A DNA stretch of 64,000 nucleotides from Macrostomum hystrix (taxonomy: Eukaryota; Animalia; Platyhelminthes): contig CATNEN010000008.1 of the NCBI GenBank assembly GCA_950097015.1, positions 4,154,001 through 4,218,000 on the forward strand. The letters run 5' to 3'. A program made the position numbers and the translations under genes. Under the pieces are notes generated by a model, which worked only from the letters and a program-made list of their open reading frames with translations, was not told the origin of the DNA and did not search any database. Numbering within the stretch: the first letter of the stretch is position 1; each line of letters begins with the position of its first letter. Positions 23,355 through 54,166 of the stretch are shown here, piece after piece.

Positions 23355-24502
23355 CAGCACTGCACGCAGGGCTGAACACAGTGTAGCCAGGGTATATGTA
23401 GGGATCCCACTCGATTTGGCTGATTTCGCATCCCCCGCTTTGGGTGCTCCAGTTCAGAACGGTCCCACTGACACCTGGCAGCAGCAGGCGACGGTCGCCG
23501 CAGTCGACACCCGACGCTGCGAAGGTCAGTCTCAGGGTGGCGCTGATGTTGAACGCTGAAGTGCCAGCTGATGGCATCAGCTTGAGGCACTGAGAGTCCA
23601 CGGACAGGTAGTAGCCGGGATAGTCGGAGGAGCGGAAGGACACGGAGCTCGGCAGGCTGCTCAGACCCGCCTGCTCAGTGAGCACTGTGGCGGTTGACTC
23701 TGATGCAGTCAGCTGGCACGAGCTTCCAGGTGAGCAGGACAGGTAGCTGCCACTGCCTGATCTGAGACGCAGCTGCTGAGACTGGCACAGGCGAGTGTCT
23801 GGAACGGAGCAATCGAACTCAGTATTTGCCTCATGGTTCGCGACGAGAATTAATTAGATAAGTTTTGGCCTTTTTGGAATTCTGAGTGACAATCGAACAG
23901 CGGTTCCCCATGACTCACAATCAACGCAGTGAAATGAAAGCGCCGAGTCAGAGTTCAGTAGAGAATCACTTGGATTGGGAGAGTCAGATCTCGTCAGATA
24001 AAAACTCTGGTGCCGGATGACCTGGCTCGGATACTGCACGGGACTGAGGCGCCAGTGATTGCAGAACTCTGTTGAGCGGATTCTGAAGCTGGCTGACTGC
24101 CTGAATGCGGCCGTGTTGTCTGTCCTTGACACGTAGAAACTTGTCCCAGACAGGCGAAAATAGTAGTCAGGTCTTTGAGCGTCTGCGATAGAGACGGCAC
24201 TCACCGTGCCATCAAGGGCTGCCTCCAGCCGCATCTGCAGCAGCGTGTTGCTCGTGGACTTGGAAATGAGAACTCGATTAGCCGAGTCGTAGGCGTAGAA
24301 ATAGTTAGAGTAGGGTCCATACGGTATGATCATGAAGTTGCCGCAGGTGATATTCTGGTCTGAAAGATGTGATTCGACGAGTTACAGTTCAACAGATGAT
24401 CAGGTGTCGATTATTAAATGAAATTGCATTTTTACCTGATGTTCGTGGAGCAGACAGCGCAAGACAGACTGCAGTCAGGACCAAGGGGAACAACTGCCGC
24501 AT
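23355..24502 (-). CDS. Secreted tandem AbfB/CBM42-like protein, unit B (inverted)
   Basis: Exons 24502-24436 (MRQLFPLVLTAVCLALSAPRTS), 24359-23919, 23798-23355. VSFRSSDYPGYYL...AFNISATL resembles the AbfB repeat VSFES.NYPGYYL...F..DATF. Confidence 0.75.
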
Positions 24503-25542
24503 GTCTTCAATGCGGAGTCGTTTCTTGTTTCGTTGTTTATTGGGAAGAGGGAAAACAGTTTCGGCAAAATCAGCTCTTCGTATTTCAGGTATTTCAGAGC
24601 ACGGAGCGGGCTCAATTATTTGAGACATGCAACTCTCAACAGAGCGCAAATACAAGGTCGCAAACTGCACCCGTTCCCAATATAAATGCTCGGAGTGGTT
24701 TTTCTTGATAAAGCTGTCAGTAAGTTTTCTTTCAAGATGCGCTCTAATTGTCAATAGAAACTGGTGAGTTGTTTAATAAACGCCAATTCAACTCAGTGTC
24801 TTTAAATGCATCGCTTCAAATGTTCTCACCGAGGCCTAGCCAAGCTCCACTTAAAGTCGAGTAGATGCTGGCTGAATTAAAAAACGGTATCTCATGGAAA
24901 GTTGCAGCTGCTAAGCTAGCGGTGCAGAACCTTCTAGAATAATTTTTTCACTCAGGTTCTCAGAGTTTACAGCAAGAAATTTGCACTGGCCCAAAATACG
25001 TCCCTTAGGAAAAATGTATGTGATAAAATAATTTTTTAACTCGTGGGCTGCTGAAAATTGTCGAGGAAGAGTTCCGTTTCGTTGAACTCGAGAGCCCTCA
25101 AATGTTTTAGCTGCGGCAGCCATTCCAAATATCATTGTCTAGCACAATTATTGCTTCGCATTGTCAGTAGCACTGAAAGTATAACAAATGATTCGCCATA
25201 AAAAGTAAAATTTTAATAAAGCACACAATGTGGACAAAAAGTGCATTGGCGCTCAATTTGAATTGTACATAAAAAAGACGAGAGCAACAATTATTTTCAC
25301 CTGATTGTCAATTCATTTCACATCAGTGAAACCTTACTTTTGATTGACAGCTGTCAAACTGGTGAAATCAATCAATATCGGAACAAATCGCAGCAGACGT
25401 TTTTTCGAAAGAGAAATATTTTTAGTGGTAGGTTGACTCTAGGTCTAGGAGAAATCATTCACCTATAAAGTCAAGGATTTCAGTACTGGAGGGTGCGAAC
25501 AGTCGAAAGCCTGTCTGAATTAGATTATAGATTCGTTCAAAA

Positions 25543-26952
25543 ATGTTCCAGTGGGCAGAGGTTCATCTAGGCCTCCTGCTGAACTTGCATGCACTATTCG
25601 CTGTCGGATCAGGTGACAAAACTATCTGTTTTATTTTTCACCGACAATTTTAGACAGAAATCCAGAATGAATTCATTTAACGTCTTTCAGGCCAGAATAT
25701 CACCTGCGGCACCTTCATCATCATACCGTATGGACCCTACTCAAACTACTTCTACGCCTACGACTCGGCTAATCGAGTTCTCATTTCCAAGTCCACGAGC
25801 AACACGCTGCTGCAGATGCGGCTGGAGGCAGCCCTTGATGGCACGGTGAATGCCGTCTCTATCGCAGACGCTCAAAGACCTGACTACTATTTTCGCCTGT
25901 CTGGGACTAGTTTCTACGTGTCCAGGACAGACAACACGGCCGCATTCAGGCAGTCAGCCAGCTTCAGAATCCGCTCAGCAGAGTTCTGCAACCACTGGCA
26001 CATCAGTCCCGTGCAGTATCCGAGCCAGATGATCTGGCCCTATGGTTATTACCTGACGAGATCTGAATATTCCGCTGATGATTCGAGCTGGTCCGACTCA
26101 GCACTCTCCTTCTCTTGCGTCACCTGTGAGTTATGTTGAATAACTCAAAGAGTACTAAGGAAAACTCATCATTGGGAGAACCCAGCGTTCTGGCAATCAG
26201 GTTGGGCCTCAGACTGCAGGACTGGCCTCACGATACGAAAGGCGGCTAAGGTGAACCAGCGGCGACACCGCACAACTTTACGGACGTCTGGCACCAGACC
26301 GCCAGGGTAGTCGAACTTCTGACGGCGCTGAGGCTCCGTTGCCTGCCATCATTCGTCACAAAATTACACCCGTACTCACTGGGGCAGTGTAGCTCGTACT
26401 CGAACACAAGACAGGCTACTGGCATCCATAGACAGGGATCAGGGGGGATTAGAGGTTGTCTTCCCTAAGCCCAGATTACATATTAGTGGGAATTCCAAAT
26501 GGCTGTTCCAGACACTCGCCTGTGCCAGTCTCAGCAGCTGCGTCTCAGATCGGGCAGTGGCAGCTACCTGTCCTGCTCACCTGGAAGCTCGTGCCAGCTG
26601 ACTGCATCAGAGTCAACCGCCACAGTGCTCACTGAGCAGGCGGGTCTGAGCAGCCTGCCGAGCTCCGTGTCCTTCCGCTCATCCGACTATCCCGACTACT
26701 ACCTGTCCGTGGACTCTCAGTGCCTCAAGCTGATGCCATCAGCTGGCACTTCAGCGTTCAACATCAGCGCCACCCTGAGACTGACCTTCGCAGCGTCGGG
26801 TGTCGACTGCAGCGACCGTCGCCTGCTGCCAGGTGTCAGTGGGACCGTTCTGAACTGGAGCACCAAAAGCGGGGGATGCGAAATCAGCCAAATCGAGTGG
26901 GATCCCTACATATACCCTGGCTACACTGTGTTCAGCCCTGCGTGCAGTGCTG
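25543..26952 (+). CDS. Secreted tandem AbfB/CBM42-like protein, unit C
   Basis: Exons 25543-25612 (MFQWAEVHLGLLLNLHALFAVGS), 25691-26125, 26512-26952. Exon 3 and its 3' flank are nearly identical to unit B in inverted orientation. Confidence 0.75.
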
Positions 26953-27159
26953 GTGAGTCTCTCCATTCACTCTTTTGTCTCAGAAAAGCTGGAGATACAA
27001 GAACTCAGGTATTTATGAAAGGTAAGCTGCAGGTTTTTAATTATTTCTGCTGCTGTCGCCTTGTCGGTGTATTTTTGTGCTTTTGAAAAAAACAACTGCC
27101 CATACGTTCTGAGCAGCGTTTGTAAATGAAAGCCTGGTTGACACCATGACTAAATACGG

Positions 27160-27878
27160 AGCATCTGTTGAGGAATCCATGGATTGCTAGTGTAGCATCT
27201 GTTGAGGAATCCATGGATTGCTAGTGTAGCATCTGTTGAGGACTCCATGGATTGCTAGTGTAGCATCTGTTGAGGACTCCATGGATTGCTAGTGTAGCAT
27301 CTGTTAAGGAATCCATGGATTGCTAGTGTAGCATCTGTTGAGGAATCCATGGATTGCTAGTGTAGCATCTGTTGAGGAATCCATGGATTGCTAGTGTAGC
27401 GTCTGTTGAGGAATCCATGGATTGCTAGTGTAGCGTCTGTTGAGGAATCCATGGATTGCTAGTGTAGCATCTGTTGAGGAATCCATGGATTGCTAGTGTA
27501 GCATCTGTTGAGGAATCCATGGATTGCTAGTGTAGCCTCTGTTGAGGAATCCATGGATTGCTAGTGTAGCATCTGTTGAGGAATCCATGGATTGCTAGTG
27601 TAGCATCTGTTGAGGAATCCATGGATTGCTAGTGTAGCATCTGTTGAGGAATCCATGGATTGCTAGTGTAGCATCTGTTGAGGAATCCATGGATTGCTAG
27701 TGTAGCATCTGTTGAGGAATCCATGGATTGCTAGTGTAGCATCTGTTGAGGAATCCATGGATTGCTAGTGTAGCATCTGTTGAGGAATCCATGGATTGCT
27801 AGTGTAGCATCTGTTGAGGAATCCATGGATTGCTAGTGTAGCATCTGTTGAGGAATCCATGGATTGCTAGTGTATCAT
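27160..27878. repeat. Minisatellite, 34-bp unit AGCATCTGTTGAGGAATCCATGGATTGCTAGTGT
   Basis: About 21 near-identical copies; palindromic core AATCCATGGATT. Confidence 0.95.
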
Positions 27879-29166
27879 CTTTTGTGGCATCTCTTGACAA
27901 TCTATTTTTGCATCAGCTTGTTAAGTGTCGAAAGATTATAAATACAATGCTTACTTTTAATTATAGTAAAATTCTTCAGAAGCCGGAGCATTCCATTCTT
28001 CCTTTTTGAGCATAATTTTACAAGCCGACTGGCTTGAGGCCGTCTACCATTGCACTTGCACTGAGGCCATTGAGCCCTACTAAATAAGTAAATTAGCATT
28101 CGATTAGCATTCCTTTAGTGCGCGCCTCATTGATATTCAGGCCACTGCGTGGGCAAATTAAGCCCCTACCTCCAGCAATGACCAGGTGCTAGGTAATGAG
28201 GCCTAGACTTACTCTGCACATAAGCCATACTTCAATTGGGGCATTGCTGCAGGCACAGGTAGCGCTCAACTAAGGAAAGTTGAATGTAGCAAAGTGAGGT
28301 TACTATGTATGGTTAACGATACGCTTGTAATCACTCTCGTTATTAGCTGTGTATGAATCATAACTTTTTATGCCCTCCATGGCATCAAAAAAAAATAAAT
28401 AAATAAATAATGGTTTAGAGATTGCATGCCGTTTATTTCATGGTGCTTTAGTTACTCTACGCCTGTGATATTTTTTTTATTGGAAGTTTTTTGCGAATCG
28501 AAAATATGCGCATGTACCACGCGTTCATGACGCAAAACCCCCAGACAAGGTCGCGTTGTGACTGACCCGTTGATTGACTTGATTGAGCAGGAACAATAGT
28601 CTTTGTTTAGTTAAGGGAGATTTTAGCCTATTAGTTAGATCTTTAGGGTTCTGAACGAGAGGTCGGGAGTTCGTACAGTTGTACACAGGCTTTGGAAGGG
28701 CCACGCCTTAGCTGCGACTTGAGCAGTCTGCACGAGCCACTAGTTGCCAAGGAGGGGGAGCGTCAAATCGCGGGTTTGAGCGAAAATTCTCTTGTTTTGG
28801 CGGGCTCAATAAATTTGTGACAGATTTCTTTTAATCAAAGACAAATAGTACATTAGCGCTGGCATTTGAAACTAATTGACTACTTCGTGAAAACCGGTGC
28901 TCTCCCATCCGAGAGATAAGCTACTAAAGCGATACGCAGGGGAGAAGTATACGAAGTATTGAAGCATTTAAAAAATAAGTTTTAAGATTTACGCACCAGT
29001 CGCGTTAATAAACTTGCCGCAGGTGATCACATAAAGCTACTCGCATAAAAAGCCTCGTTGCAAAGATTAGTAATAAAAAATAGCATGATAAAGCAAAGCA
29101 GGTCAGGCGATCGCGCAGTTTGCATGGTGCGTTCGGACAGCACAGCCTGGTCTCGTCATCTCTTGC

Positions 29167-31827: not shown

Positions 31828-32674
31828 TATTTAGTTAGCAGAAAAATCCTACTTAATTCCAATTAGCTTTTCTATACCAACGCCTTACTCTGGCTGCAGT
31901 CTTATAGGTGAGGCTTCTTTCTTAGAATGTTTCGCAATTGAAATTGCGCCCTATCGCCTAACGCCGTTTACATTTTTTACTGCAAAATATTTTCACTGCG
32001 AAAATGGGCACAGTAATGGGCTGTGAGCTTTGCTGGCACTTGCACATTGGTCCTTGTATTGGCTGAAGTTTTACTGCCTAGTGAGTTTTTGGCCTAACTG
32101 ATAAGGATATTGCACTTGCCAACAGCAGGAAAAAAACGAGCGAGCAGCATTTTGCATAGTCATGAAGTTAGAAAAGCGAAATAGACTCGAGCTTATCTTA
32201 CCACAGATAGCAATGAAAGTTTAGAGACTTGTATTTGGGTAAATTAAATACTTCTGTTGCACATACTGGTTACTCTAAATACAACTGCTGCTGAATACAG
32301 GCGGCTCATTTCTAATAGGATTTGATTCAATAGAAAAAAATTATAGGATTTGCTCTAACTTTCCAAGTTGTCAATATTGCAGAGATATAAAATCAGGGTT
32401 ATTTGATATTTTTAATTATGAATCTTCAATCCCTCACAACCTTTATGAAAGGCCTAGTTGTAAGCCGAGCCGGTCGACGCTATCGAAATTAGAACAAAAT
32501 ATCGAAATTAGAACAAAAAGCTAAATGCGAGTACCAGAAAGTCAATATTTGCGGGTGAAAGTCTACTTCTAACTTAAAATCGATCGATAAATAATGGGGA
32601 AGAGAATAGTTTGGGCTAGACTGAAGGGGTTTAGCACAAAAGGGGCGAAAAAGTCGATAACAAATTGCGTGTAC

Positions 32675-33095: not shown

Positions 33096-33100
33096 GCCAC

Positions 33101-36096: not shown

Positions 36097-37254
36097 ATGC
36101 CACCGCTGCTCGAGCTAGCGGTCTTAGGATTCTACTTAGTTTCCATGCAGCTCATGCATGGGCCGCAAGGTGAGACCCCTGTTGTGAGGCTTATGACAAC
36201 CGTAGAACAGCTCGTTATGTTGCTTACGATGCATGATTTTGATATTTCAGGGCAAAACATCACATGCGACACCTTCATGATGATGGCCTACGGACCAGAC
36301 TCAAACCGATTCTTCTCATACAACTCGAACTCAAGAGTGATCATCTCACAGTTGTCAACCGACTCGCCGCTGCAGATGAGGCTCGAAGCCGCACTGGATG
36401 GAACTGTCACCTGCGTGTCCTTCGCCGACGCACTCAGGCCGAATTTCTACCTGTTCATGAATGGCCAGCAGCTGCACGTGTCGCAGACTGACAATTCGAC
36501 CTCATTCCGACGAGGCGCGAGCTTCAGCATTGAGACTGCGGAGTTTTGCAATCACTGGCGCATGAGCCCGCTGCTGTATCCGGGACAGCGGCTGCGACAT
36601 GCCAGCTTCGTCCTGACCAGTTCCGACTGGACGAATGAGGCACTTTTCAGGTCCGACTCAGCGTTCTCCTTTCACTGTGTCAACTGTGAGTCTGCGTCGA
36701 ATCTATTTGCATACTGCTAATTTTTACCCATCATACTGGCCTGCCACGATTTTATGTGCCAGTGCGCTCGGTTTAAATAAAGTTCAGGTCAAAATTAATT
36801 TTTTCAGACCACCCTTTGTGCCCGAGTCGGCGGTTGCGGCTCAGATCAAGCGACAGTGGCTACATCTGGTGCCAACCTGGCGGTCTGTGTCAGCTGGTGC
36901 CGAGAGATTCGAACGCGACGGTGCTCAGAGAGCTGGCAGGGTTGAGCAGCGCACCAAACTCTGTCTCCCTTGAGTCTGCCTCTGATACTGGCTTCTTTCT
37001 GTCAGTGGACGACCAACAGTGCCTTAAATTGAGCATTAAATACCCGAATCACGCTACGTTGAACACTAGGTCCACCTTAATGTTTACTTACGCCGCATCG
37101 GGAGTCAATTGCAACAACCGTCGCCTCCTTCTACCTGATAGTAGGGCTCTTGTGGTGAATAAAAGTTTGAATTCAATGTGTCACCTCAAATCGATCGTTT
37201 GGGAGCCGAGCAGCTTCGCCAGCGATTTGGTGTTGAGTCCGGTCTATCAACCAG
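36097..37254 (+). CDS. Secreted tandem AbfB/CBM42-like protein, unit D
   Basis: Exons 36097-36169 (MPPLLELAVLGFYLVSMQLMHGPQ), 36251-36685, 36808-37254; RLRHASF...LFRSDSAF; AGLSSAPNSVSLESASDTGFFL. Confidence 0.75.
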
Positions 37255-38194
37255 GTGAGTTGTGCTGCTGAGCATCTCCACCTCCGTATGGCAAGGAGAA
37301 CAGTATTGGTGAGTGCAGGTAAGTACGGTCGTCCTTTGAATTTCCATTTAATCATCAAAGCCCAGCATGTTCTACTTGCTCGCTAGTAGCATTGTACGAG
37401 TCCAACGTCAAATTATATTGTAAATATTTCGTCAAGATTAATCCAGAAAGAGATTTTTTATCAACATCTGACTTCATTTGATTTTTTTCATTTGTTTATC
37501 TAAGAACAATGACTGTTATTAATCACAGAAAATATGCAAATATATGGTTACTAACATTTTCCTATGTCTTAAGCAAGACATTAAAAAAAGAATTAAAATC
37601 GAATGTGAAAACAAAGCAAAAAAATTCAGGAAGCTGTACAGAGAGACAACAAACAGCGAATGAACATTGTCTGAATTAAAAAGACACAGATAAGAAAAAG
37701 CTGCAGTCTTTGATATGGCAATATGTTTCTGTCTGGTCCCAACTGTTCTGGTTTGAGCTGGGAAACGGATTTTTCAAACATCCGTTTTGTGGATTTTCCT
37801 GTACTACCAACCTTACCTGGCTTTGCAGGGAGATGACTTTATGCTTTAATTCATAGCCATCACAATCCCCCATGCTGATTTTCTTTGTAGCTGAAGCTGG
37901 ATGCTCTGACAGTTTGACAAAATCGATCCCAACGAAGAACATGAATTGAAAAGATGGTTGAAATAGGCAAATCTAGTTGTATTCCAGTGTAGATTCCGTT
38001 GTAGGCACGCCAACAATATTTCTTGCACCTACGAGCGTTGATAGAGATAGAGACTACACCTAGACCATTTGAGCACAGTGTACAACCAGAGTCGCAGCCT
38101 CATCTGTTGCGCAGCGCTTCCGAAGGCTGTGTACAGCTTGTTCAGTCCATGGAACAGGCCGCAACACCCACCCTAATTCTGATCCTACAGTATT

Positions 38195-39420
38195 CGAGGG
38201 CTGTCCCAAAAGTAAGTTTCGGTTATCGATAAAAGGTGAACAGTTTGAAGGAAAGTCTTAAAACTTTAACAGTAGTGAAAACTGGTCATAGTTACTCCAC
38301 AAATTTGCCGTCAAGGTCGACGCAATTTTACCAGCGCCGCACCCACGATTAAAAGGCAGCTTCGCAGCCGCCGGTTGCCAGATGCCCCAAAGCTGATGAA
38401 GCATTGTTGTTAATCTGCTCCACAGAGGCGAAGCGTTGACCGCGAAGGCTCTCCTTCATTCTGGGAAATATATAGAACTCCGCTGGAGCCAAATCAGATG
38501 AACAGCGTGGCTGTGCCAGGACCTCCCAGCTCCAGGACTCCAGGAGCTCCTCCACTCTTCTGGCGCGGTGCACAGGTGCGTTGTCGTGGTGAAAAATCAC
38601 GCCTTTCTCCAGCAAACCAGGCCGCATTTTCCTGATGGATGGCCTAAATTTTTGTTGCAGTACCCGTCGGTAATATTCTGCATTCACCTTGGTGCCGATT
38701 GGCACTGGCCAGTCCACCAGGACCTCATGGATATCAAAGAAGATGATGTGCATCACCTTCAAGGAGCTCTGCTTCCGTTGAACCTTCTAAGGACTCACTG
38801 ATCCCCTTGGAATCCACTGTGCTGACTGGCGCTTGAGCTCAGGATCCCACTCGTAGACCTCAGTCAGGAGATGAGGCACCCACTTTGCGAAGATCTTGTG
38901 CGTGTTCAGCTGCTCAGTAAGAAAGCGATGCACTGTGCTGTGAGGAATGTCCAGGAGGTCCTCGATCTCATTGCAAGTCAATCTGCTGTCAACAGTGACT
39001 GCATGTTTGACACGCTTGGCATTTGCATCAGTAGTGACTGTTATTGGCCTTTGTCTTAATCGACATCCTGCTTGAACTTCACGGACCCATTTCCGAACCG
39101 TTTGAATTGATGGACCATCTTCTTTCAGAACTTGTCCAAGCTCTTCATGAATCTCTGATGTTGATTTGCCAGCCAAAACTGAAAACTTGATGTTTCTGAC
39201 GTCGCATCTTGTGAACGAAGCCGTAGTGGCCATCTTTGCAAACAAAGCTGTGTTTAACTTGATGCCCTGCAGCTTTTGAGACTGAATTTGCTTTCAAATT
39301 TGTGGTGCTCTATGCCATGGATATATGCGAGCTAGATTCAGGAATAACGAACCGCGTTTGCCAAAAATTTGCCTAAGAAAATGCATACTAAAGCGAAACT
39401 TATTTTTGGGATAGCCCTAG
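38195..39420 (-). mobile_element. Mariner-family DNA transposon, defective
   Basis: Imperfect TIRs CGAGGGCTGTCCCAAAAGTAAGTTTCG / CGAAACTTATTTTTGGGATAGCCCTAG, right end followed by TA, length ~1.23 kb. Transposase is split (39245-38787, 38762-38349) with WVPHLL, HHDNAPVH and DLAPAEF motifs; the TGDETW (first catalytic D) segment is deleted. Confidence 0.9.
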
Positions 39421-39434
39421 TAAAGGTGGTACCT

Positions 39435-39793
39435 GGGGGTCGGTGGCAGAGCAGTCTAACGCGTTTGCCTCTCGCACCAAGGTCCCTAAGTTCGATTCCA
39501 CGGCGAGGCCACATTCATTTGGGGCGCAGCCGCGGAGAGAAGGCTTGGGGGCTTGTCGTGCAATTTACGCCCTTGTGGGCCAACCTCCAAGGCACAGTGA
39601 GAGTGTACACTGCCTGACGATGAGAAAGTCAGGGCAGATGTACACACCTGTGTGAGCGTGTGCCTGCGTACGGTATCTGTGTGCGTGTGTGCTCAGGAGT
39701 CAGCGAAATGGGCAGAATTGCCTCCTCGCTGGCTGCGGGTCTAGTGTCACCAAATTATGTGCCACTGCCCGCAGCCCTTCTGCAATTATTATT
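39435..39793 (+). mobile_element. tRNA-derived SINE, full length
   Basis: A-box TGGCAGAGCAG and B-box GTTCGATTCC in a tRNA-like head, (ATT)n tail, 12-bp target-site duplication AAGGTGGTACCT at 39423-39434 and 39794-39805. Confidence 0.85.
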
Positions 39794-40115
39794 AAGGTGG
39801 TACCTATTTTTCACTTGTTGGTACCCTTATGCTACCCTCTCGGCCAAATGTCGTAAGTTATAATCCCTTCCGCTAACGAGCATATGTGATATTCTGAGCA
39901 GTACAACAATGAACAGTTAAAGGTTGGTAAAAGCTATAAAACAAGACCGGATATAATGCGCCACCAGCCAATGGGAGTCGGACGAGCGACCAATAGGGCG
40001 CGGAGAAATCGCTGCTGCAGGTCTGATCCATTGTATTTTTTTCTAACCAAAATCTCCCAGCTTTATATTGCAGCACCAAGACGTCAAGCACTGAATGATT
40101 GGCTGCTCCCAGGCA

Positions 40116-41752
40116 ATGTCCACACTACTTCAGCTTCTGCTCATGGTGGGCCTCGCGTTCAGCCCCACTACAGTGCAATGTAAGAAAATGATAATTCATT
40201 GTAAAACAGCAATCATGCATGAAAGTCGATGTAATCAATTTGTTTAAATACTACAGGCCAGAACATCACCTGCATTAACTTTATAATCATTTTCTACGGA
40301 CCATTTTCTTACAACTTCTGGAAAATTGACGCCAATTCAAGAGTTCTTCACTCACGGTCAGCCGCCGACTCACCGCTACAGATGCGGTTGGAGGCAGCCC
40401 TTGATGGCACAGCGAACGCAGTGTCTTTTGCAGACGCACAGAGACGCGGCTACTATTTTCACCTGTCCGGTACGGCGTTGTACGTCACCCAGAATGACAA
40501 CACGATCGCTTTCAGGGAGTCAGCCAGCTTCAGAATTAGGGCGTCGGAGTTCTGCAATCACTGGCGCATCAGTCCCGTGCAGTATCCGAGCCAGGTGATC
40601 CGGCACCAGAACACTTACCTGACAAGATCCGAATGGTCCACAGATTCTCTACTACTCTCAGATTCTTCTTTATCCTTCCACTGTGTCAACTGTAAGTCAG
40701 ATTGCATACAGCAATACTTCATTGGTGCACGCTACAGATGTCTATGGACCAAAGTTATGGGGCAGTTTAGCTAGGCGGAGGGGGTCAGTGGCATTGGCAG
40801 TGGCATTGTTTGCTAAGGTTTAGAATTCTATGCAGAGCGGTCTAACACGTTTGCCTATCGCACCAAGGTCCCTGAGCTCGAATCCGCAGCGAGGCCACAT
40901 TAATTTGGGGCGCAGCAGCGGAGAGAAATTTGTCGTGCAATTTACGCCCTTGACGGGCAACCTCTAAGGCACAGTGAAAGCGCACACTGCCTAACGACGA
41001 GAAAGTCAGGGCAGATGTACACACCTGTGTGAGCATGTGCCTGCGTATGGTATCTGTGTGCGTGTGGGCTCAGGAGTCAATGAAATGGGCAGAATTGCCT
41101 CCTCGCTGGCAGCCGGTCTATTGTCACTAAACGATGTGCCATTGCTTGCAGCCCTCCTGAAATTGTTTTTATTAATAGCTAGGTAGATATATCATTTCGT
41201 GGCCATAGATATTCCAGGCCTTGATAGGTAGACACCAATATACCCCGCCAGAATAAAACCACAGCTTCGCAGTGTTTCCCACAGCTTGGGCTAGTTCTGC
41301 TCCTGTTTCAGACACCAGCATCTGCTCAGGCCAGCGACTGCTCCTGAAGGCGACAAGCAGCAACTCGTACATATCGTGCTCAGCTAATCTATCGTGTCTG
41401 CTAACGCCTTACGAATCAGAGGCAACAGTGCTCTATGATCAGGCGGGCCTGAGCAGCCTGCCGAGCTCTGTGTCCTTCCGCTCATCCGACTATCCCGGCT
41501 ACTACCTGTCCGTGGACTCTCAGTGCCTCAAGCTGATGCCATCAGCTGGCAGTTCAGCGTTCAACATCAGCGCCTCCCTGAGACTGACCTTCGCAGCGTC
41601 GGGCGTCGACTGCGGCGATCGTCGCCTCCTGCTGCCAGGGCTCAGCAGCAGCGTGCTGACTATTCCGGGCTATGGATGTGCGATCAACTCGGTCATCTGG
41701 AATTCTGAGAGCTACACTACCTACACGCAGTTTAATTTAGTCTGTTTGCCAG
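40116..41752 (+). CDS. Secreted tandem AbfB/CBM42-like protein, unit E
   Basis: Exons 40116-40179 (MSTLLQLLLMVGLAFSPTTVQ), 40257-40691, 41312-41752; SINE in intron 2. Confidence 0.75.
40780..41175 (+). mobile_element. tRNA-derived SINE copy in intron 2 of unit E
   Basis: Colinear with the 39435 copy; short insertion in the A-box; decayed TSD TAGCTAGG on both sides. Confidence 0.8.
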
Positions 41753-42737: not shown

Positions 42738-43870
42738 ATGACTGAGTTATCCCTAGCTCGGCTTAGACAACTGCTCGTTGTCTGCGTAGCGCTGACAGCA
42801 CTTGGAGTTTCAGGTGAGGCTGAATTAACTCCCTGATCCCTGGTGTCATTTACTAGAAGTACTTGAAAAGTGTCATGCTTTGTAAAATAAAACAATTATT
42901 CATTCAGGACAAAACATCACATGCGACACCTTCATGATGATGGCCTACGGACCAGACTCAAACCGATTCTTCTCATACGACTCGAACTCAAGAGTGATCA
43001 TCTCACAGTTGTCAACCGACTCGCCGCTGCAGATGAGGCTCGAAGCCGCACTGGATGGAACTTCCACCGCTGTGTCCTTCGCCGACGCACTGAGGCCGAA
43101 TTTCTACCTTTTCATGAATGGCCAGCAGCTGCACGTGTCGCAGACTGACAATTCGACCTCATTCCGACGAGGCGCAAGCTTCAGCATTGAGACTGCGGAG
43201 TTTTGCAATCACTGGCGCATCAGCCCGCTGCTGTATCCGGGACAGCGGCTGCGACATGCCAGCTTCGTCCTGACCAGTTCCGACTGGTCGAATGGGGCAC
43301 TTTTCAGGTCCGACTCAGCGTTTTCGTTTCACTGCACCGACTGTGAGTAGACCAGCAAAGCTCTTTTATCGTAGAATACGGAATAAAAAAGTGTAAAAAG
43401 CCTGCGTTCCAAAAACACCGCAGACATTCCACTCTGCCCATCGAGAAGGCTTCGCATGTTGAATGTTAAAAGCTGGACCTACCTGGTGTGCTCAACCGCG
43501 AGCTGCGATCGGACGGCAGCCGCATCGAGTGCCACGGTGTTTATTGAGCAGGCGGGCCTGAGCCGCGCGCCAAACACAATGTCCTTCCAGTCGGCCAATC
43601 AGTCAAATCAATTTCTCTACTTATCCGGTCACTGCTTCTTGTTGGCACCATCGACAGGCAATTCGGCATTCAACAGCGGCGCCAGCCTGCGACCGGCCTA
43701 CGCTGCGGCTGGCTCCGAGTGCAGCGAGCGACGCCTCCTGCTGCCAATGATCAGCGGTGCCGTGCTGGACTTCGTGGCTGGCGCCAGCTGCAGAATCACT
43801 TACGCCACCTGGAATCGAGCTACGAGTATTTACTCGAATTATCCCACTATACAACTAGAGTGTGAACCAG
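42738..43870 (+). CDS. Secreted tandem AbfB/CBM42-like protein, unit F
   Basis: Exons 42738-42813 (MTELSLARLRQLLVVCVALTALGVS), 42908-43342, 43424-43870. Confidence 0.75.
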
Positions 43871-44511
43871 GTGAGTTGGCAATTCTTGTCAGTAGAAAAC
43901 CTCTGAACAATACATACGGCGCGTGCAGTTAGGAAGCTGAAAGGTAAGTTGAAGGGTAATTTATTATCATAAAAGTATCGGCATTTATTAGTGCCGTTTT
44001 CCTTCGATAATTTTGTTCCACGTCCTAATTGACTCACTACTAGCACAAGTAATATGCATGGCTTCGCGGTGGTTTTAATTACTTTTCCCGATAGAAAATG
44101 CCTGGCTAGAATATTGTGTTTGAGTAGGTGATGTACCTTCTGGCCAGGATGTCTGGGATTCGAGTCTCAGCCCAAAGGGGGGAAATGCGTCCTTAACAGT
44201 AGAAATACCACGGGGTATTTCAAATCGTTGCCTACTTCCCAATACCTGCCAAACCGAATGACCGATTTTCGTGAAAGTCCACCATATGGATTTAAATTTT
44301 CCGCCCTTTTCGATGAACTAAGTTTCCAAGCCGTCCGAAGTCAGCATCGGCGAGATATTCAGCGATTTTTGCCGAAGACTGGGTTTTTGACTGGGCTAGT
44401 GTCATTTCCATCGATAATTTATTAGCTATCTTTGTGATCCAGTCAAACTTTAAGGACCAATATAGTCTAGCCAGCTGCATCCAATAGACGATCGAAAGTG
44501 ACTGTCAATAA

Positions 44512-46555
44512 CCTTGTCTCCTTGTCACTCTCCTTGTCATTCTCCTTGTCACTCTCCTTGTAATTCTCCTTGTCACTCTCCTTGTCACTCTCCTTGTAAT
44601 TCTCCTTGTCACTCTCCTTGTCACTCTCTTTGTCACTTTCCTTGTCACTCTGCTTCTCACTTTACTTGTCACACTCCTTGTCACTCTCATTGCCACTCTC
44701 CTTGTCACTCTCCTTGTCACTCTCCTTGTAACTCTCCTTGTCACTCACCTTGTCACTCTCCTTGTCACTCTCATAGTCACTCTCCTTGTCGCTCTTCTTG
44801 TCTCTCTCCTTGTCACTCTCCTTGTCACTCTCCTTGTAACTCTCCTTGTCACTCACCTTGTCACTCTCCTTGTCACTCTCATAGTCACTCTCCTTGTCGC
44901 TCTTCTTGTCTCTCTCCTTGTCACTCTCCTTGTCACTCTCCTTGTAACTCTCCTTGTCACTCACCTTGTCACTCTCCTTGTCACTCTCATAGTCACTCTC
45001 CTTGTCGCTCTTCTTGTCTCTCTCCTTGTAACTCTCCTTGTCACTCACCTTGTCACTCTCCTTGTCACTCTCCTTGTCACTCTCTTTGTCACTTTCCTTG
45101 TCACTCTGCTTCTCGCTTTACTTGTCACACTCCTTGTCACTCTCCTTGTAATTCTCCTTGTCACTCTCCTTGTCACTCTCTTTGTCACTTTCCTTGTCAC
45201 TCTGCTTCTCACTTTACTTGTCACACTCCTTGTCACTCTCATTGCCACTCTCCTTGTCACTCTCCTTGTCACTCTCCTTGTCACTCACCTTGTCACTCTC
45301 CTTTTCACTCTCATAGTCACTCTCCTTGTCGCTCTTCTTGTCACTCTCCTTGTAACTCTCCTTGTCACTCACCTTGTCACTCTCCTTGTCACTCTCCTTG
45401 TCACTCTCTTTGTCACTTTCCTTGTCACTCTGCTTCTCGCTTTACTTGTAACTCCCCTTGTCACTCACTTTGTCACTCTCCTTGTCACTCTCATAGTCAC
45501 TCTCCTTGTCGCTCTTCTTGTCTCTCTCCTTGTAACTCTCCTTGTCACTCACCTTGTCACTCTCCTTGTCACTCTCCTTGTCACTCTCTTTGTCACTTTC
45601 CTTGTCACTCTGCTTCTCGCTTTACTTGTCACACTCCTTGTCACTCTCCTTGTAATTCTCCTTGTCACTCTCCTTGTCACTCTCTTTGCCACTCTCCTTG
45701 TCACTCTCCTTGTCACTCTCCTTGTCACTCACCTTGTCACTCTCCTTTTCACTCTCATAGTCACTCTCCTTGTCGCTCTTCTTGTCACTCTCCTTGTAAC
45801 TCTCCTTTTCACTCTCATAGTCACTCTCCTTGTCGCTCTTCTTGTCACTCTCCTTGTAACTCTCCTTGTCACTCACCTTGTCACTCTCCTTGTCACTCTC
45901 CTTGTCACTCTCTTTGTCACTTTCCTTGTCACTCTGCTTCTCGCTTTACTTGTAACTCCCCTTGTCACTCACTTTGTCACTCTCCTTGTCACTCTCATAG
46001 TCACTCTCCTTGTCGCTCTTCTTGTCTCTCTCCTTGTAACTCTCCTTGTCACTCACCTTGTCACTCTCCTTGTCACTCTCCTTGTCACTCTCTTTGTCAC
46101 TTTCCTTGTCACTCTGCTTCTCGCTTTACTTGTCACACTCCTTGTCAATCTCCTTGTAATTCTCCTTGTCACTCTCCTTGTCACTCTCTTTGTCACTTTC
46201 CTTGTCACTCTGCTTCTCACTTTACTTGTCACACTCCTTGTCACTCTCATTGCCACTCTCCTTGTCACTCTCCTTGTCACTCTCCTTGTCACTCACCTTG
46301 TCACTCTCCTTTTCACTCTCATAGTCACTCTCCTTGTCGCTCTTCTTGTCACTCTCCTTGTAACTCTCCTTGTCACTCACCTTGTCACTCTCCTTGTCAC
46401 TCTCCTTGTCACTCTCTTTGTCACTTTCCTTGTCACTCTGCTTCTCGCTTTACTTGTAACTTCCCTTGTCACTCACTTTGTCACTCTCCTTGTCACTCTC
46501 ATAGTCACTCTCCTTTTCACTCTCCTTTTCAATCTCCTTGTCACTCTCCTTATCA
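44512..46555. repeat. 12-mer satellite (CTCCTTGTCACT)n with higher-order blocks
   Basis: Variant units (TCATAGTCAC, GCTTCTCGCTTTAC) recur in blocks. Confidence 0.95.
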
Positions 46556-47740
46556 CTCTACATGCATACAAGCATGCTGCAATCTGATTCTGATTGGAGA
46601 TAAACACTGTCCAGGGATTTCATTGGAGTCAACACTGTCCAATCAGGTAGGCACCCACCATTGTCTAAAACTACCTGTGCGTGAATCGACCTAATATTCG
46701 GTTGCTCATGTCATATTCAAGTTGCAGAATCAAAAACATATTGCTAAGGCCGTAGGCAACATCACCGGCTAAACCAAATGGCTTTTAGCATACAATCAGG
46801 TGTCTTCTTGATGCTGATGCTTTCTGAAGTGTACTCAGGTGAGAGTCCAGGATTGCTCAAAGTCAGTGCCAGATGCTTTGTCATAGATCTTGCGCGAATA
46901 ACAATGAGAAAAATAGTTTCAGAACAAAGCTTCAACTGCAGCAGCAGCTTCATCTTCATGCCGTATGGACCCTACTTAAACTACTTCTACGCCTACGACT
47001 CGGCTAATCGAGTTCTCATTTCCAAGTCCACGAGCAACACGCTGCTGCAGATGCGGCTGGAGGCAGCTCTTGATGGCACGGTGAGTGCCGTCTCTATCGC
47101 AGACGCTCAAAGACCTGACTACTATTTTCGCCTGTCTGGGACTAGTTTCTACGTGTCTAGGACAGACAACACGGCCGCATTCAGGCAGTCAGCCAGCTTC
47201 AGAATCCGCTCAGCAGAGTTTTGCAATCACTGGCGCCTCAGTCCCGTGCAGTATCCGAGCCAGGTCATCCGGCACCAGAGTTATTACCTGACGAGATCTG
47301 AATGGTCCACCAATGCCCTGCTGATGTCAGACTCGGCCGTTTCCTGTCACTGCGTCGATTGTGAGTAGACACCTGACCACTTACAGCCACTTTGTACCCA
47401 ACAAATCGACAATGAAATCTCTAATCACTATAGCTCGCATTGGCCATGGCTAAAGGACAGGTGTAGTTTTAGTTTTCCACTCAAGCGGAAATGAGAACCT
47501 GTGGCCCGTCACTGTCTGGGGATTATCGCACAAAAGACATCCTCATCTGCTGCTGATCTGCCAAATCCGGCTAGCCTCGACAATGGCATGACCTGCTTGA
47601 CTCGGATCAGGCAGACAAGGCTCAGAGAATTCTAATTAATTCCAGGAATTCATGACAGAGAAAATTTTTAATATTTCCTTTCGATATGACTGCCTTCTGA
47701 CTTGGCTCTTGTACTTTTATAACTGTGAAAGAATGTTTGC

Positions 47741-47943
47741 AATAATAATAATTGCAGAATGGCTGTGGGAAATGGCATATCATTTGGTGACACTAGACCT
47801 ACTGCCAGCGAGGAGGCAATTCTGCCCATTTCGCTGACTCCTGAGCACACACGTACTCAAATGAATGTGGCCTTACCGAGGAATCGAGCTCAGGGACCTT
47901 GGTGGGAGAGGCAAACACGTTAATCGCTCTGTCACCGACCCCC
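47741..47943 (-). mobile_element. SINE copy with internal deletion, intron 2 of unit G
   Basis: Head and tail match the full copy; the central part is missing. Confidence 0.75.
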
Positions 47944-47949
47944 GTAAGA

Positions 47950-48110
47950 TGAGTAACGAACATTAGTAACGAACATTAGTAACGAACATTAGTAACGAAC
48001 ATTAGTAACGAACATTAGTAACGAACATTAGTAACGAACATTAGTAACGAACATTAGTAACGAACATTAGTAACGAACATTAGTAACGAACATTAGTAAC
48101 GAACATTAGT
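47950..48110. repeat. 13-bp tandem repeat AGTAACGAACATT
   Basis: About 12 perfect copies adjacent to the SINE 5' end. Confidence 0.95.
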
Positions 48111-50727
48111 ACGATGAGTAGCAGCATTAGCTGATGTGAAATTTGGAAAGTGGGTATTGCGCCGGCTGCTGCTTTTCTAGCTGTAAATCTGCTTTAGTTT
48201 CTTCTTATCGACTCTATTCATTACCTGATGTCGCTTATTAATCATGCTTGGGGGGGCTAAAATGTCGTCAAGCTCATTAAATTGTTTTATGAGGCCTGAT
48301 AGATAATAAAATTATTTATTCCTTATTGTTGTTCAAGATACCTTCAGCTCAACCTTAAATGATCAGCGCCCCAGTTACAAGATTGCAATCCTCGCACCTG
48401 TTGTCAGACACTCAGCTCTGTGCAACTCGCCAGTTGCAATTGAAGACAGTCTCTGGCGCAGGTGATCATGTTTACCTGCTCTGCACACCCAATGCCACCT
48501 GTCAGCTGACGAGAGATTCATCCGGCGCCACAGTGCTCACTGAGCAGGCGGGCCTGAGCAGCCTGCCGAGCTCCGAGCTACCTGTCCGTGGACTCTCAGT
48601 GCCTCATGATGAGGCCATCAGCTGGCACTTCAGCATTCAACATCAGCGCCACCCTGAGACTCATCTTCGCAGCGTCGGGCGTCGACTGCGGCGATCGTCG
48701 CCTCCTGCTGCCGGGGTTCAGCGGCGGCGTGCTGATCTTGGACGAATCACCAACCGCTGTCTGCCATGTTCGATTGGCCAACTGGAGTCCGAGTAGCTAC
48801 TCAACTTATGCGCTGTTTAGCTTCACATGTCAGCCAGGTGAGATTAATTTGCTAAAAATTCGCGCCATCTCGACAAAGGACCCCCAGGAGTGAAAGGACG
48901 GGAAACAGCGTTTCTTAGAAACATTTTTGGAGGCCATTTTGCCGAGAAATGCACTGCGCCGATAGGACATTTTTTTAATTTTTCTGCACAACTCTAGTGA
49001 CTGTACTTTGATTTGGTAGAAGGCTCAACTTTAGATATTAGGTTTTTTATTTCCAGCTTCATGTATTTCTGTCCAGCTTCATTTGTGAAAAACAGGATTT
49101 CATACTATTTTTCCCATTTCCTCTACATGCCCTCCCCTAAGTGCCAAAATGCATTAATTTGCTCCTGAAACAACGAAACCATTTATAAAATATACGAGTA
49201 ATAGTACAAACTTTTAGGAAGCTTAGTAAAATTCGTTGCAGCAGCATGTTTGGTAAGTTACATCAAAAGAAGAGCTTCGGATCTGCTTCCGATAAAAACG
49301 ATCAATATTTTAATAAGTTTAAAAAAAATGAAAATTTCCTCTTTCTCCGCAGTGTATTTTTGGCGAAAACCAGCCTCTTAAACTTTTCTAAGAAACGATT
49401 AATCCTGTCCTTGTCGATTTTATTCAGGGATAACTTCCATCGGGTAAGAACAGAGGTGAGGATATATTTCTTAGATTACACATGCCGAGCAGTACTGCTT
49501 TTGTTTGAATGCTTGTATCTTACGTTATCAGAACTTGCATGTACTAAATAAAAAGGCCCACGAGGCAAAAAATATTTTAAAACTTTTAGAATTGCACGAC
49601 GTCTGGCCCAACTGGGTGAAGTGTCATTTCTGTTCGATGTTGCATTTTTCTCTTGATCCTTAGTCGTCGGCCGCGTCGATTCGTAGCTCGAATTTAGAAA
49701 TCAGGACTCTCCGCTTAGGGAAACCCTGTCGCTAGTTCTTTTCATGACGTCAGCTTCTATTTTTAGAAAGTCACGTGAAGTTTCTATTTTTAGAAAGACA
49801 TCAGTTTCCTTTCTAGAAAATCATCAAATTCTATTTTTAGAAAGTGACGTGATATCTCCTGCGCCCATAGATTTTCCCATGGCTATATTTCAGATCATTC
49901 AATTCCACTCTCCTCAATAGCTCAACCAGATCCATTTAGAAGGAATCCGAAAGTCACCATAAATAGCAACTTTCTAAAAACTTGCTATAATGTCTTAGAA
50001 CAGACCTCCACCACCATCTGTTGGTTAAATAAAACTGCGCGACAGCAATTTTTTGTTGTGTCCACATCCTGTGCAGAACTTCCTGTGTCCGCTCAGCATA
50101 GTGGCTGAAATGAAATCTAAGAAGGAGATCTTTTGGAAAAAAAACTTCACTTTTTTAAGCTTTACTGTGTAATATATTATGAACTGAACTAAGCACACAG
50201 GCTACAGTGAACACGCAGCTAGATGCGTATTGTGTACTGACAAATAAACTTAAGCAGTTCTAAACTGCATTCTTTGTTCTCTCTTCCGAGTGGCCCTTAG
50301 TCATTAGAAGAGTACGTTAAGCTTAAGTACCCCTAGTCAGGTATTCAGACACCCAAGGTCTCTTGTTATACTCTACTATTAAGATTACCATAAGTATGTT
50401 CAACTTTAAAATGAATGCAAGCTAAAAGCAAAAGTATTTTTACGGACTATGAATAAAAAATGTAGCAAAAAACGGATCATGTTCTAACTGCTCAGTCAGA
50501 AACTGCCCAACTAAGCAAACTGCTCACTTAGAACATTTACAAAGTGAGCAAACACACATGGCCTGAAGTTGAGAAGGACTTAGTACATTGATGCATACAC
50601 CTTGCGAGACTGCCACTTAGATCTCGCTGAAAGACACTTAATAATAGCAGGTGATTATAAATTTAATTTGTCGAAATGACTAAGAAAAGGTCAGAGTGAT
50701 TCAAATAAATGCGATGCACGAGACGGA

Positions 50728-51095
50728 GAGGGTGGGCGCTGGGGCAGGGTGACACCCAAGACGGGGCAGAGAGAAAGGTGGGTGGCGGGGCTGACCAATC
50801 AAGCGCCGACCCAGCCACGCAAAACAGGGTTTGGGGGTTAGGGCAAAAGCCATGTGGACGGGGGAGGGTGGGCGCTGGGGCAGGGTGACACCCAAGACGG
50901 GGCAGAGAGAAAGGTGGGTGGCGGGGCTGGCCAATCAAGCGCCGACCCGGCCACGCAAAACAGGGTTTGGGGGTTAGGGCAAAAGCCATGTGGACGGGGG
51001 AGGGTGGGCGCTGGGGCAGGGTGACACCCAAGACGGGGCAGAGAGAAAGGTTGGGGGCGGGGCTGACCAATCAAGCGCCGACCCGGACACGCAAA
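50728..51095. repeat. 136-bp GC-rich tandem repeat (~2.7 copies)
   Basis: GAGGGTGGGCGCTGGGGCAGGG recurs at 50728, 50864, 51000. Confidence 0.9.
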
Positions 51096-51473
51096 ACCGG
51101 TTTGGGGGATTGGTTGGTGGACCAGATGGGTCGGGAGAGCACAATGCACTTTGGACGGGAAAAGGAAAGGGTGAAAAACCAAAACAAGGAATAGAGTACA
51201 GCTCACAACATATTTATATACTAACACATACCCCTTAAACATACCGAACACATATAGTAACGAGAGCATCACAATCCTCCACTTGATTAAGAATGTTTGA
51301 TCAATGATTAGTTGCTTGCCAAAAGGAATTTGCTAATCCGCTTTAAAAGACAAGCTTCATCAAGATATTACTATGCGATTAAGCAAGCTGAATTCCTGAA
51401 AAGCTTGCACATAGCCCTTGGAGGTGCGCTGTACATCCTGGGTGTACATACACTGGGTGTTGTTGGAAAAGGT

Positions 51474-51828
51474 AATAATAAAAAATAGTAATAATATCTG
51501 CTGGAGGGCTGCGAGCAAAAGCACATCATTTAGTGACACTAGACTTGCTGCCAGCGAGGAGGCAATTCTGCCCATTTCGCTGACTCCTGAGCACACACGC
51601 ACTCAGATACTGTACGCAGGCACACGCTCACACAGGTGTGTAATCTGCCCTGACTTTCTCATCGTCACTCTCGATGTGCCTGGGAGGTTGGCCCTAGAGG
51701 GCGTAAATTGCACATTAAGCCCCCAAGCCTTCTTACCGCGGCTGCGCCAGAAATGAATGTGGCGTCGCCCCGGAATCGAGCTCAGGGACCTTGGTGCGAG
51801 AGGCAAATGCGTTAGACCGCTCTGCCAC
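51474..51828 (-). mobile_element. SINE copy, near full length, upstream of unit H
   Basis: Reverse complement of head, body and (AAT)n tail. Confidence 0.8.
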
Positions 51829-52383
51829 TCATGGAAGGACAGAGCGGATTTCAAATTCCCGCTGCCTACTTCACCATGGCTCCCAAACCGATTATCGTGA
51901 AAGTCCACCATATGGATCTAAATTTTTTGCCCATGCTCTGCATTTTCATGGCGATTGGTCAAGCACTTTGGGAGATACAGAAAACTGAAAAATGTGGGTA
52001 ATTGAAATACCCCGTGGTCTCTGCTGCTAATGCATTTTTGACTTCAGTGTCTTCGTGTGCCACTAATTGAATGGGGCGTTTTATCTGTTTAGAGCGTGAA
52101 ATGGGGAAATTTCTGGGTGAAATTAAGCCTGGCATCACTATACCTAACATCCAATCGGAACTGGTCCCGACTCAGAATCTCGAACAGATTGCAAATTCTG
52201 TACAACATTAAAACCAATCAAGACCATCTCAAGGATTCCAAGAATCAGGAAAAATGAAATTTGCTCCGCCATCCAAGCCTGCTCAGCAAAGTTGCCTCCT
52301 AGTCATGTGAGTACTGCTGATGAAGCCGGCTGTATTAAAGGTAATCTCAGTCATTCAATCACTCAACTAATTTCTTTGCACAG

Positions 52384-54166
52384 GTCAAACCAGCTGCGAC
52401 ACCTTCATGATCATGGCCTATGGAGCTTACTCAAACCGATTCTTCTCATACAACTCGAACTCAAGAGTGATCATCTCACAGTTGTCAACCGACTCGCCGC
52501 TGCAGATGAGGCTCGAAGCCGCACTGGATGGAACTGTCACCTGCGTGTCCTTCACAGATGCGCTCAGGCCGAATTTCTACCTGTTCATGAATGGCCAGCA
52601 GCTGTACGTGTCGCAGACTGACAATTCGACCTCATTCCGACGAGGCGCGAGCTTCAGCATTGAGACTGCGGAGTTTTGCAATCACTGGCGCATCAGCCCG
52701 CTGCTGTATCCGGGACAGCGGCTGCGACATGCCAGCTTCGTCCTGACCAGTTCCGACTGGACGAATGAGGCACTTTTCAGGTCCGACTCAGCGTTTTCGT
52801 TTCACTGCACCGACTGTGAGTAGATCATTCGAATTGTCGTAGTTCAGTAATTGAGTAATCAACAAATCTGAGTAAGATTTTATGAGTTGGAAATCTCGGA
52901 AAAACTGGGATTTACAAGGACGCATTGCTTCTTGTTCCAGATAGACTGGGATTTACAAGGCCGCATTGCTTCTTGTTCCAAAAAGACTGGGATTTACAAG
53001 GCCGCATTGCTTCTTGTTCCAGATAGACTGGGATTTACAAGGCCGCATTGCTTCTTGTTCCAGATAGACTGGGATTTACAAGGCCGCATTGCTTCTTGTT
53101 CCAAAAAGACTGGGATTTACAAGGCCGCATTGCTTCTTGTTCCAAAAAGATTGGGATTTACAAGGCCGAATTGCTTCTTGTTCCAAAAAGACTGGGATTT
53201 ACAAGGCCGCATTGCTTCTTGTTCCAAAAAGATTGGGATTTACAAGGCCGAATTGCTTCTTGTTCCAGATAGACTGGGATTTACAAGGCCGCATTGCTTC
53301 TTGTTCCAGATAGACTGGGATTTACAAGGCCGCATTGCTTCTTGTTCCAGATAGACTGGGATTTACAAGGCCGCATTGCTTCTTGTTCCAAAAAGACTGG
53401 GATTTACAAGGCCGCATTGCTTCTTGTTCCAAAAAGATTGGGATTTACAAGGCCGAATTGCTTCTTGTTCCAGATAGACTGGGATTTACAAGGCCGCATT
53501 GCTTCTTGTTCCAGATAGACTGGGATTTACAAGGCCGCATTGCTTCTTGTTCCAGATAGACTGGGATTTACAAGGCCGCATTGCTTCTTGTTCCAAAAAG
53601 ACTGGGATTTACAAGGCCGCATTGCTTCTTGTTCCAGATAGACTGGGATTTACAAGGCCGCATTGCTTCTTGTTCCAGATAGACTGGGATTTACAAGGCC
53701 GCATTGCTTCTTGTTCCAGACAGCAAGTTATGGCCATCGCGACTGCTTCGTCTCCAGGATGCCTTCAGTGAGAAATTCCTGGCCTGTCCACTCTTGGGTT
53801 CTTGCACTTTACAGGCGGGCTACCAGAACGGCACATTGCTCACTGAGCAGGCGGGCCTGAGCAGCCTGCCGAGCTCCGTGTCCTTCCGCTCCTCCGACTA
53901 TCCCGGCTACTACCTGTCCGTAGACTCTCAGTGCCTCAAGCTGATGCCATCAGCTGGCACTTCAGCGTTCAACATCAGCGCCACCCTGAGACTGACCTTC
54001 GCAGCGTCGGGTGTCGACTGCGGCGACCGTCGCCTCCTGCTGCCGGGGTTAAACGACAGCGTGCTAAGCTACAGGGCCGGAGCGATCAATTGCGAAATCC
54101 AATCAACTGCCTGGACAGCCAGCTATAAGCCTGAATCCGACAAGTTTAGGCCAGTTTGTCTAACAG
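52384..54166 (+). pseudogene. Tandem AbfB/CBM42-like unit H; both domain exons open but no intact signal exon
   Basis: Exons 52384-52815 and 53720-54166 are open and in phase. A donor at 52307 lies the usual ~77 nt upstream but is preceded by an in-frame TAG with no in-frame ATG. The conserved LCP/LCQ Cys is Trp here. Could be a pseudogene or an internal module. Confidence 0.5.
52904..53719. repeat. 41-bp minisatellite containing the splice acceptor of unit H exon 3, ~20 copies
   Basis: Unit CTGGGATTTACAAGGCCGCATTGCTTCTTGTTCCAGATAGA. Confidence 0.95.

Follow-up and report, generated by a model that had tools for sequence, protein, structure and literature searches.

Repeated short-tract gene conversion as the probable origin of mosaic exons in a tandem gene cluster of the flatworm Macrostomum hystrix

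How does a gene come to be closest to one set of its neighbours in one exon and to a different set in the next? This question is raised by a cluster of eight tandem paralogues (A to H) that lies at 21-54 kb of a 64,000-nt stretch of the genome of Macrostomum hystrix (the window; GenBank assembly GCA_950097015.1, contig CATNEN010000008.1, positions 4,154,001 to 4,218,000) and was delineated by self-comparison and by tblastn with both domain exons. Gene H, e.g., unites an exon 2 of the type found in D and F (beta) with an exon-3 core of the B type and with private exon-3 flanks. The mosaics are known here from assembly sequence alone, namely from this window of one contig, and it is very probable that they were made by repeated interlocus gene conversion over short tracts among ancient tandem duplicates.

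The cluster

Each gene has a private signal-peptide exon; exons 2 and 3, which are symmetrical (phase 1-1), encode one AbfB/CBM42-like beta-trefoil domain apiece. Splice sites were inferred from alignments, and searches, alignments and fold prediction were all carried out per exon rather than on joined, spliced models. Only gene B, which is oriented head to head with C, is on the minus strand; the other copies are on the plus strand:

21095..22243, plus strand: gene A; exon 1 (signal) 21095-21152, exon 2 21255-21704, exon 3 21782-22243
23355..24502, minus strand: gene B; exon 1 24436-24502, exon 2 23919-24359 (alpha), exon 3 23355-23798 (common core)
25543..26952, plus strand: gene C; exon 1 25543-25612, exon 2 25691-26125 (private 3' 90 nt), exon 3 26512-26952
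36097..37254, plus strand: gene D; exon 1 36097-36169, exon 2 36251-36685 (beta), exon 3 36808-37254 (unique)
40116..41752, plus strand: gene E; exon 1 40116-40179, exon 2 40257-40691 (own type), exon 3 41312-41752 (common core)
42738..43870, plus strand: gene F; exon 1 42738-42813, exon 2 42908-43342 (beta), exon 3 43424-43870 (unique)
46778..48837, plus strand: gene G; exon 1 46778-46838, exon 2 46923-47360 (alpha core, private 5' 45 nt), exon 3 48408-48837
52384..54166, plus strand: gene H; exon 2 52384-52815 (beta), exon 3 53720-54166 (alpha-associated core, private flanks)

An earlier, sequence-only reading of this DNA had proposed that domain cores are reassorted among the copies. Its eight copies and the exon boundaries that it implied were recovered, and its outer limits, 23355 and 54166, are the last bases of exon 3 of B and H, respectively. 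The most divergent copy is A, which is without a converted tract and has 52-55% nucleotide identity to every other copy. Exon 2 measures 432-450 nt and exon 3 441-462 nt, and both are multiples of 3 in phase 1-1 except for exon 3 of G (430 nt), in which a 29-nt deletion in the shared core leads to a frameshift and stops. Reading frames are intact in seven of the eight copies; G, as judged from its sequence, is a probable pseudogene.

Tracts shared between the copies

The exon-3 core comprises about 220 nt that are 93-98% identical in B, C, E, G and H, within an exon whose remainder is 40-60% identical. The tract occupies the following positions:

23474-23692, minus strand: exon-3 core of B
26618-26833, plus strand: exon-3 core of C
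41421-41639, plus strand: exon-3 core of E
48526-48715, plus strand: exon-3 core of G
53829-54047, plus strand: exon-3 core of H

Compared with B, the core of H deviates at 4/209 sites, that of E at 11/209 and that of G at 12/180; in the exon-3 flanks of B and H, 60/106 sites of the 5' part and 65/119 of the 3' part differ. The cores of A, D and F are divergent, with about 45-75% identity per 30-column window for B and D. The seed motif CTCACTGAGCAGGCGGG was present in four exact copies and in two with three mismatches, compared with 0.13 expected by chance.

In B and C, the similarity extends over a longer, inverted tract:

23162..23805, minus strand, partner 26505-27145: B-C inverted identity tract, 97.5% over 644 bp

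It covers the whole of exon 3 together with the 7 nt that precede it and the 193 nt that follow. Between the two genes, no alignment was obtained for exon 1 and intron 1, for the last part of exon 2 or for intron 2, which measures 120 nt in B and 386 nt in C. The distal ends of the tract coincide with the starts of two different minisatellites, a 20-mer array at 23025-23158 (B) and a 34-mer array at 27160-27891 (C).

The grouping in exon 2 is a different one. D, F and H agree at 94.4-95.6% of nucleotide positions, compared with 62-64% between these copies and B, C, G and E, and their identity starts no more than 5 nt from the acceptor and stops no more than 12 nt from the donor. The differences within D/F/H are clustered and the odd one out changes by segment, which indicates several events inside this group. 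Exon 2 of B, C and G is 88-91% identical overall and about 97-100% identical over alignment columns 45-375, and each pair differs at 3/224 sites over columns 66-301. The corresponding alpha core is located as follows:

23999..24317, minus strand: alpha exon-2 core tract of B
25733-26051: homologous tract of C
46968-47286: homologous tract of G

The identity breaks abruptly at a private 5' stretch of 45 nt in G and at a private 3' stretch of about 90 nt in C. Exon 2 of E is about 71% identical to the alpha type and contains a patch (40552-40641) with only 9/90 differences to G (about 90% identity), compared with 98/295 upstream. The last 13 nt of exon 2 of D (36670-36685) are identical to those of E (40676-40691), as are 18/20 positions over the last 20 nt, whereas D differs from F and H at six of these 20 positions; this end may represent a D-E micro-tract, with a p value of 0.12 that is not significant on its own.

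Sensitive blastn (word size 7) of introns and flanks detected no similarity between the paralogues except for the 193 nt downstream of B and C and transposon copies. The sequence-only reading had described just this picture, i.e., a beta exon 2 common to D, F and H, an alpha core common to B, C and G, a near-identical exon-3 core in five copies that is divergent in A, D and F, the pairing in H of a beta exon 2 with the core seen in B, C and G, dissimilar signal exons and introns, and identity that stops inside exons. All of this was confirmed. Pairwise identity changes stepwise along the exons, with abrupt stops at both exon-3 core edges and at the private ends of C and G.

Tests of shared history

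Synonymous divergence (pS, proportion of synonymous differences, Nei-Gojobori method NG86) in the exon-3 core is 0.136 for B-E, 0.110 for B-H and 0.120 for E-H; in both flanks it is 0.59-0.76. For exon 2, values of 0.07-0.10 among D, F and H stand against 0.71 for B-H. Overall, pS is 0.06-0.14 inside the tracts and falls to 0.02 in exon 3 of B and C, versus a saturated 0.59-0.80 outside. The saturation of the unconverted parts indicates that the duplicates are very old. Nonsynonymous divergence (pN) in the exon-3 flanks is high (0.35-0.58).

A GENECONV-like test, which had been suggested by the sequence-only reading, permutes the polymorphic columns and thereby allows for site-specific conservation. 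In exon 3, none of 2,000 permutations (0/2000) matched the observed tract in any of the nine pairs that combine two of the lineages B/C, E, G and H, and the same result was obtained in exon 2 for BC, BG, CG, DH and EG, which makes 14 pairs over both exons. The test gave a p value of 0.61 for exon 3 of B and C, a pair that is near-identical along the whole exon.

The approximately unbiased (AU) test on exon 2 rejects a grouping of H with B, C, E and G (p=0.013). In place of AU topology tests, which are weak for the exon-3 core, a test of branch-length heterogeneity was used, and a single tree whose branch lengths in exon 2, exon-3 core and exon-3 flanks differ only by a scaling factor was rejected against unlinked branch lengths (twice the log-likelihood difference, 2dlnL=704; 24 degrees of freedom; p=3e-133). 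The genes of this cluster thus have a mosaic ancestry, with tracts at the positions given above. GC content at third codon positions (GC3) is 0.76-0.81 in the converted exon-3 core, 0.54-0.68 in the flanks of the same copies and 0.57-0.71 in unconverted cores, and this rise, calculated from few tracts, is compatible with biased conversion. An Rfam search of the window found nothing and hence no support for an RNA element behind the conserved cores.

Gene conversion and alternative explanations

According to the explanation that we favour, ancient tandem duplicates would exchange pieces by non-allelic conversion, in tracts of about 220-640 bp that involve different subsets of the paralogues. 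No fewer than four sets of events would be required, i.e., exon 2 of D/F/H, the exon-2 core of B/C/G, the exon-3 core of B/C/E/G/H, and exon 3 plus 3' flank of B-C, and the range of pS from 0.02 to 0.14 in the tracts indicates that they happened at different times. Tracts would extend only as far as homology allows, with ends at splice sites or at short nucleotide islands that are conserved throughout the family. Ends within 12 nt of splice sites can be explained by the unalignable introns, and the edges inside exons are located on family-wide peaks of nucleotide conservation (PYGP and EFCNHW codons in exon 2, EQAGLS and RRLLLP codons in exon 3), which agrees with homology-limited tracts. The outcome would be mosaics such as H. 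From these patterns we infer conversion rather than another route of recombination, the limitation of tract ends by homology, and whatever can be said about the direction of copying.

Two variants of this process were rejected. Divergence islands kept by selection would imply that the neutral introns beside the tracts were also homogenized, yet they were not. Conversion from a cDNA template disagrees with the two separate tracts shared by B and C, which are separated by an unshared 3' end of exon 2 and an unshared intron, and with the fact that no intron was lost.

Several observations speak against our explanation or restrict it. For the exon-3 core alone, a position of H beside D and F was not rejected by the AU test (p=0.14), a weak result that is due to A, D and F forming long branches on a near-star tree. 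The conflict therefore concerns distances rather than a resolved topology. The identity of about 60-75% between unconverted lineages is low for starting homologous recombination, and the first exchanges are thus unexplained. Moreover, the data fix neither copying direction nor the number of events, and donors beyond the window are possible.

The same tract ends might also be viewed as the signature of a dedicated system of diversification, in which cassettes anchored at motifs are exchanged and G possibly serves as a donor, so that lectin variety would arise in a manner like that of Sp185/333, FREP or pseudogene-templated systems. The same conserved motifs do repeatedly mark the tract ends, the broken copy G still has both shared cores, and the products are secreted and lectin-like, but nothing in the sequence points to somatic change, immune expression, positive selection or associated machinery, and ordinary homology-limited conversion accounts for the same edges; we regard such a system as very unlikely. 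A broader proposal, with non-random tract ends, sub-repeats of the beta-trefoil as cassettes and G as a reservoir, would amount to germline combinatorial lectin diversification or, alternatively, to one instance of short-tract, exon-bounded conversion that is unusually frequent throughout the genome of this species, and it too appears unlikely. The likeness to diversified invertebrate immune families that was drawn in the sequence-only reading would be only an analogy.

Exon shuffling, which the same reading had offered beside conversion, would have moved or swapped whole phase 1-1 domain exons via intronic recombination or unequal crossing-over. Both domain exons are indeed symmetrical modules of this type, and the identity of exon 2 in D, F and H ends within 12 nt of both splice sites. 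However, none of the blocks brought intron sequence along, the edges of the exon-3 core and those at the 3' end of C and the 5' end of G fall within exons, and a crossover in intron 2 would have brought a full exon 3 together with its downstream region, neither of which H shares with any other copy. Shuffling is accordingly highly improbable, and from the mechanism originally put forward only the part on conversion tracts among old duplicates stands, which agrees with the permutation tests, with divergence at synonymous sites and with the test that rejected a single history.

It is scarcely credible that the copies are young and owe the divergence of their signal exons, introns and flanks to local hypermutation or diversifying selection, with the cores left unchanged. 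The variable segments correspond to the outer thirds of a binding-type domain and the pN of the flanks is as high as 0.35-0.58, as this idea would have it, but the flanks show saturation at synonymous sites (pS 0.6-0.8) and the introns are unalignable, compared with a pS of about 0.1 in the cores, and divergence from one ancestor cannot place H nearest to D and F in exon 2 and nearest to B in the exon-3 core. Finally, collapse or chimeric joining of paralogous reads during assembly of this locus, which is rich in repeats and minisatellites, is very unlikely in view of the private substitutions of each copy within the blocks (2-6% divergence), block edges at homologous positions in five copies, and intact frames in seven of eight genes.

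Predicted products

With respect to the encoded proteins, the cluster belongs to the domain family AbfB (Pfam PF05270, gathering score 22.8 bits). The exon-2 domains that were tested, those of B, D and H, score 40.6-42.7 bits (B, 40.6). Of three exon-3 domains tested, those of C and H reach 25-27.6 bits with coverage of the central part only, and that of A stays under the cut-off with 18.4 bits. An AlphaFold2 model of the exon-3 domain of H has a predicted local distance difference test (pLDDT) value of 77, with a weaker C-terminal third, and its best Foldseek matches are the CBM42 structures 3kmv and 9fnk (TM score 0.65-0.73). The products are thus predicted, from sequence and model, to be secreted, cysteine-rich proteins with two CBM42-like domains, and the modelled fold suggests that they may bind glycans.

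A profile of the eight exon-2 peptides retrieved 89 proteins at E<=1e-3 from 1.84 billion representatives, with a best value of 7.5e-25 and no protein at E<=1e-30. The best matches are uncharacterized tandem-AbfB proteins of the tunicate Clavelina and of Hydra and Hydractinia. Word searches with the exon-3 open reading frame (ORF) of C and with exon 2 of D gave no matches, none of ten ORFs taken from the window had an exact counterpart in a sequence collection, and a literature search on AbfB lectins in invertebrates returned nothing relevant.

Gene ends, repeats and neighbours

In seven of the eight copies, a short exon with a hydrophobic leader and a phase 1 end is located 75-102 nt before exon 2, and these seven leaders are mutually unrelated in sequence. 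H yielded no convincing signal exon. Exon 3 ends with AG/GTRAG in phase 1 in all eight copies, so that at least one further exon must exist; tblastx among the regions downstream of the eight exon 3s detected no common fourth exon. Most copies contain a second GGTAAGT 60-90 nt past the exon-3 donor (e.g., 22244-22330, 37255-37330 and 43871-43950), which may mark a micro-exon.

Intron 2 of H (52904-53720) contains a 41-bp minisatellite of about 20 copies, each unit of which includes an exon-3 acceptor signal (polypyrimidine tract plus AG); the last copy supplies the real acceptor (53719/53720), and the intron consequently harbours about 20 decoys. A further repeat of about 350 bp, probably a non-autonomous transposon, is dispersed over the window, with copies in the second introns of E and G and in front of genes E and H. 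The mobile elements of the window are the following:

11487-11722, 39443-39794, 40832-41171, 47743-47862 and 51489-51828, both orientations: dispersed repeat of about 350 bp, 80-90% identical, no Rfam match
38349-39245, minus strand: mariner/Tc1-type transposase in two broken ORFs (HTH_48, DDE_3), between D and E

A 2-kb minisatellite with a 24/108-bp unit between F and G (44517-46559) yields a spurious ORF of 726 codons. Long minisatellites are no rarer outside the cluster (e.g., 649-1968, 16241-17506 and 57271-63069) and are therefore a property of the genome rather than of the gene family. The genes that flank the cluster are unrelated to it (GH47, RhoGEF-PH-SH3 and RING).

Significance and comparison with known systems

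The process invoked here, gene conversion, is well known, and the cluster is a clean new example of it in an uncharacterized animal gene family, which the locus defines as one of secreted tandem CBM42-like proteins. It shows in a well-resolved natural case how short conversion tracts can assemble novel mosaics out of very old paralogues within one protein domain. Whole-gene trees or estimates of synonymous divergence (dS) for this cluster would be wrong, which is a warning for phylogenetics and dating, and if the same holds true genome-wide in this flatworm, it bears on the evolution of its gene families in general.

The arabinose-binding beta-trefoil of CBM42/AbfB (PF05270; PDB entries 3kmv, 9fnk and 3akf) resembles the domains of the cluster by Pfam match and predicted fold. 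In contrast to CBM42, the cluster proteins are animal, secreted and cysteine-rich, with two tandem domains and no glycosidase module; their domains are only 15-18% identical to the solved structures, and the family motif has been lost from the third sub-repeat of the exon-3 domain. Proteins of Hydractinia (XP_057315557.1; 303 amino acids, two domains), Hydra (XP_002159690.1) and Clavelina (CAK8691440.1) are likewise secreted and tandem AbfB-like, and the size class of the two-domain proteins of Hydractinia (299-303 amino acids) fits the gene models of the cluster. These multi-AbfB proteins are only distant relatives and have no known function.

A similar layout has been described for Sp185/333 (SpTransformer) of the sea urchin (PMC5103432), where small secreted proteins with a leader exon and block mosaics are also clustered in repeat-rich DNA. 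The resemblance is limited to this layout, with no relationship in sequence or fold; moreover, Sp185/333 genes have two exons with element mosaics and a known immune expression, whereas the flatworm cluster has so far been read only as sequence.

The closest parallels are interlocus conversion mosaics, e.g., those of GOT1 in Tigriopus (PMC3728101), of Caenorhabditis (PMC3966223) and of human segmental duplications (PMC3790853). There, too, short non-reciprocal tracts make parts of neighbouring paralogues alike, islands of divergence persist, old sequence is newly combined, and detection is based on GENECONV-type tests and contrasts in synonymous divergence. The cluster of M. hystrix differs from these systems in its eight copies with at least four overlapping exchange groups, in the saturated divergence and hence great age of its unconverted parts, and in tracts whose ends coincide with splice sites or, within a single domain exon, with short conserved motifs.

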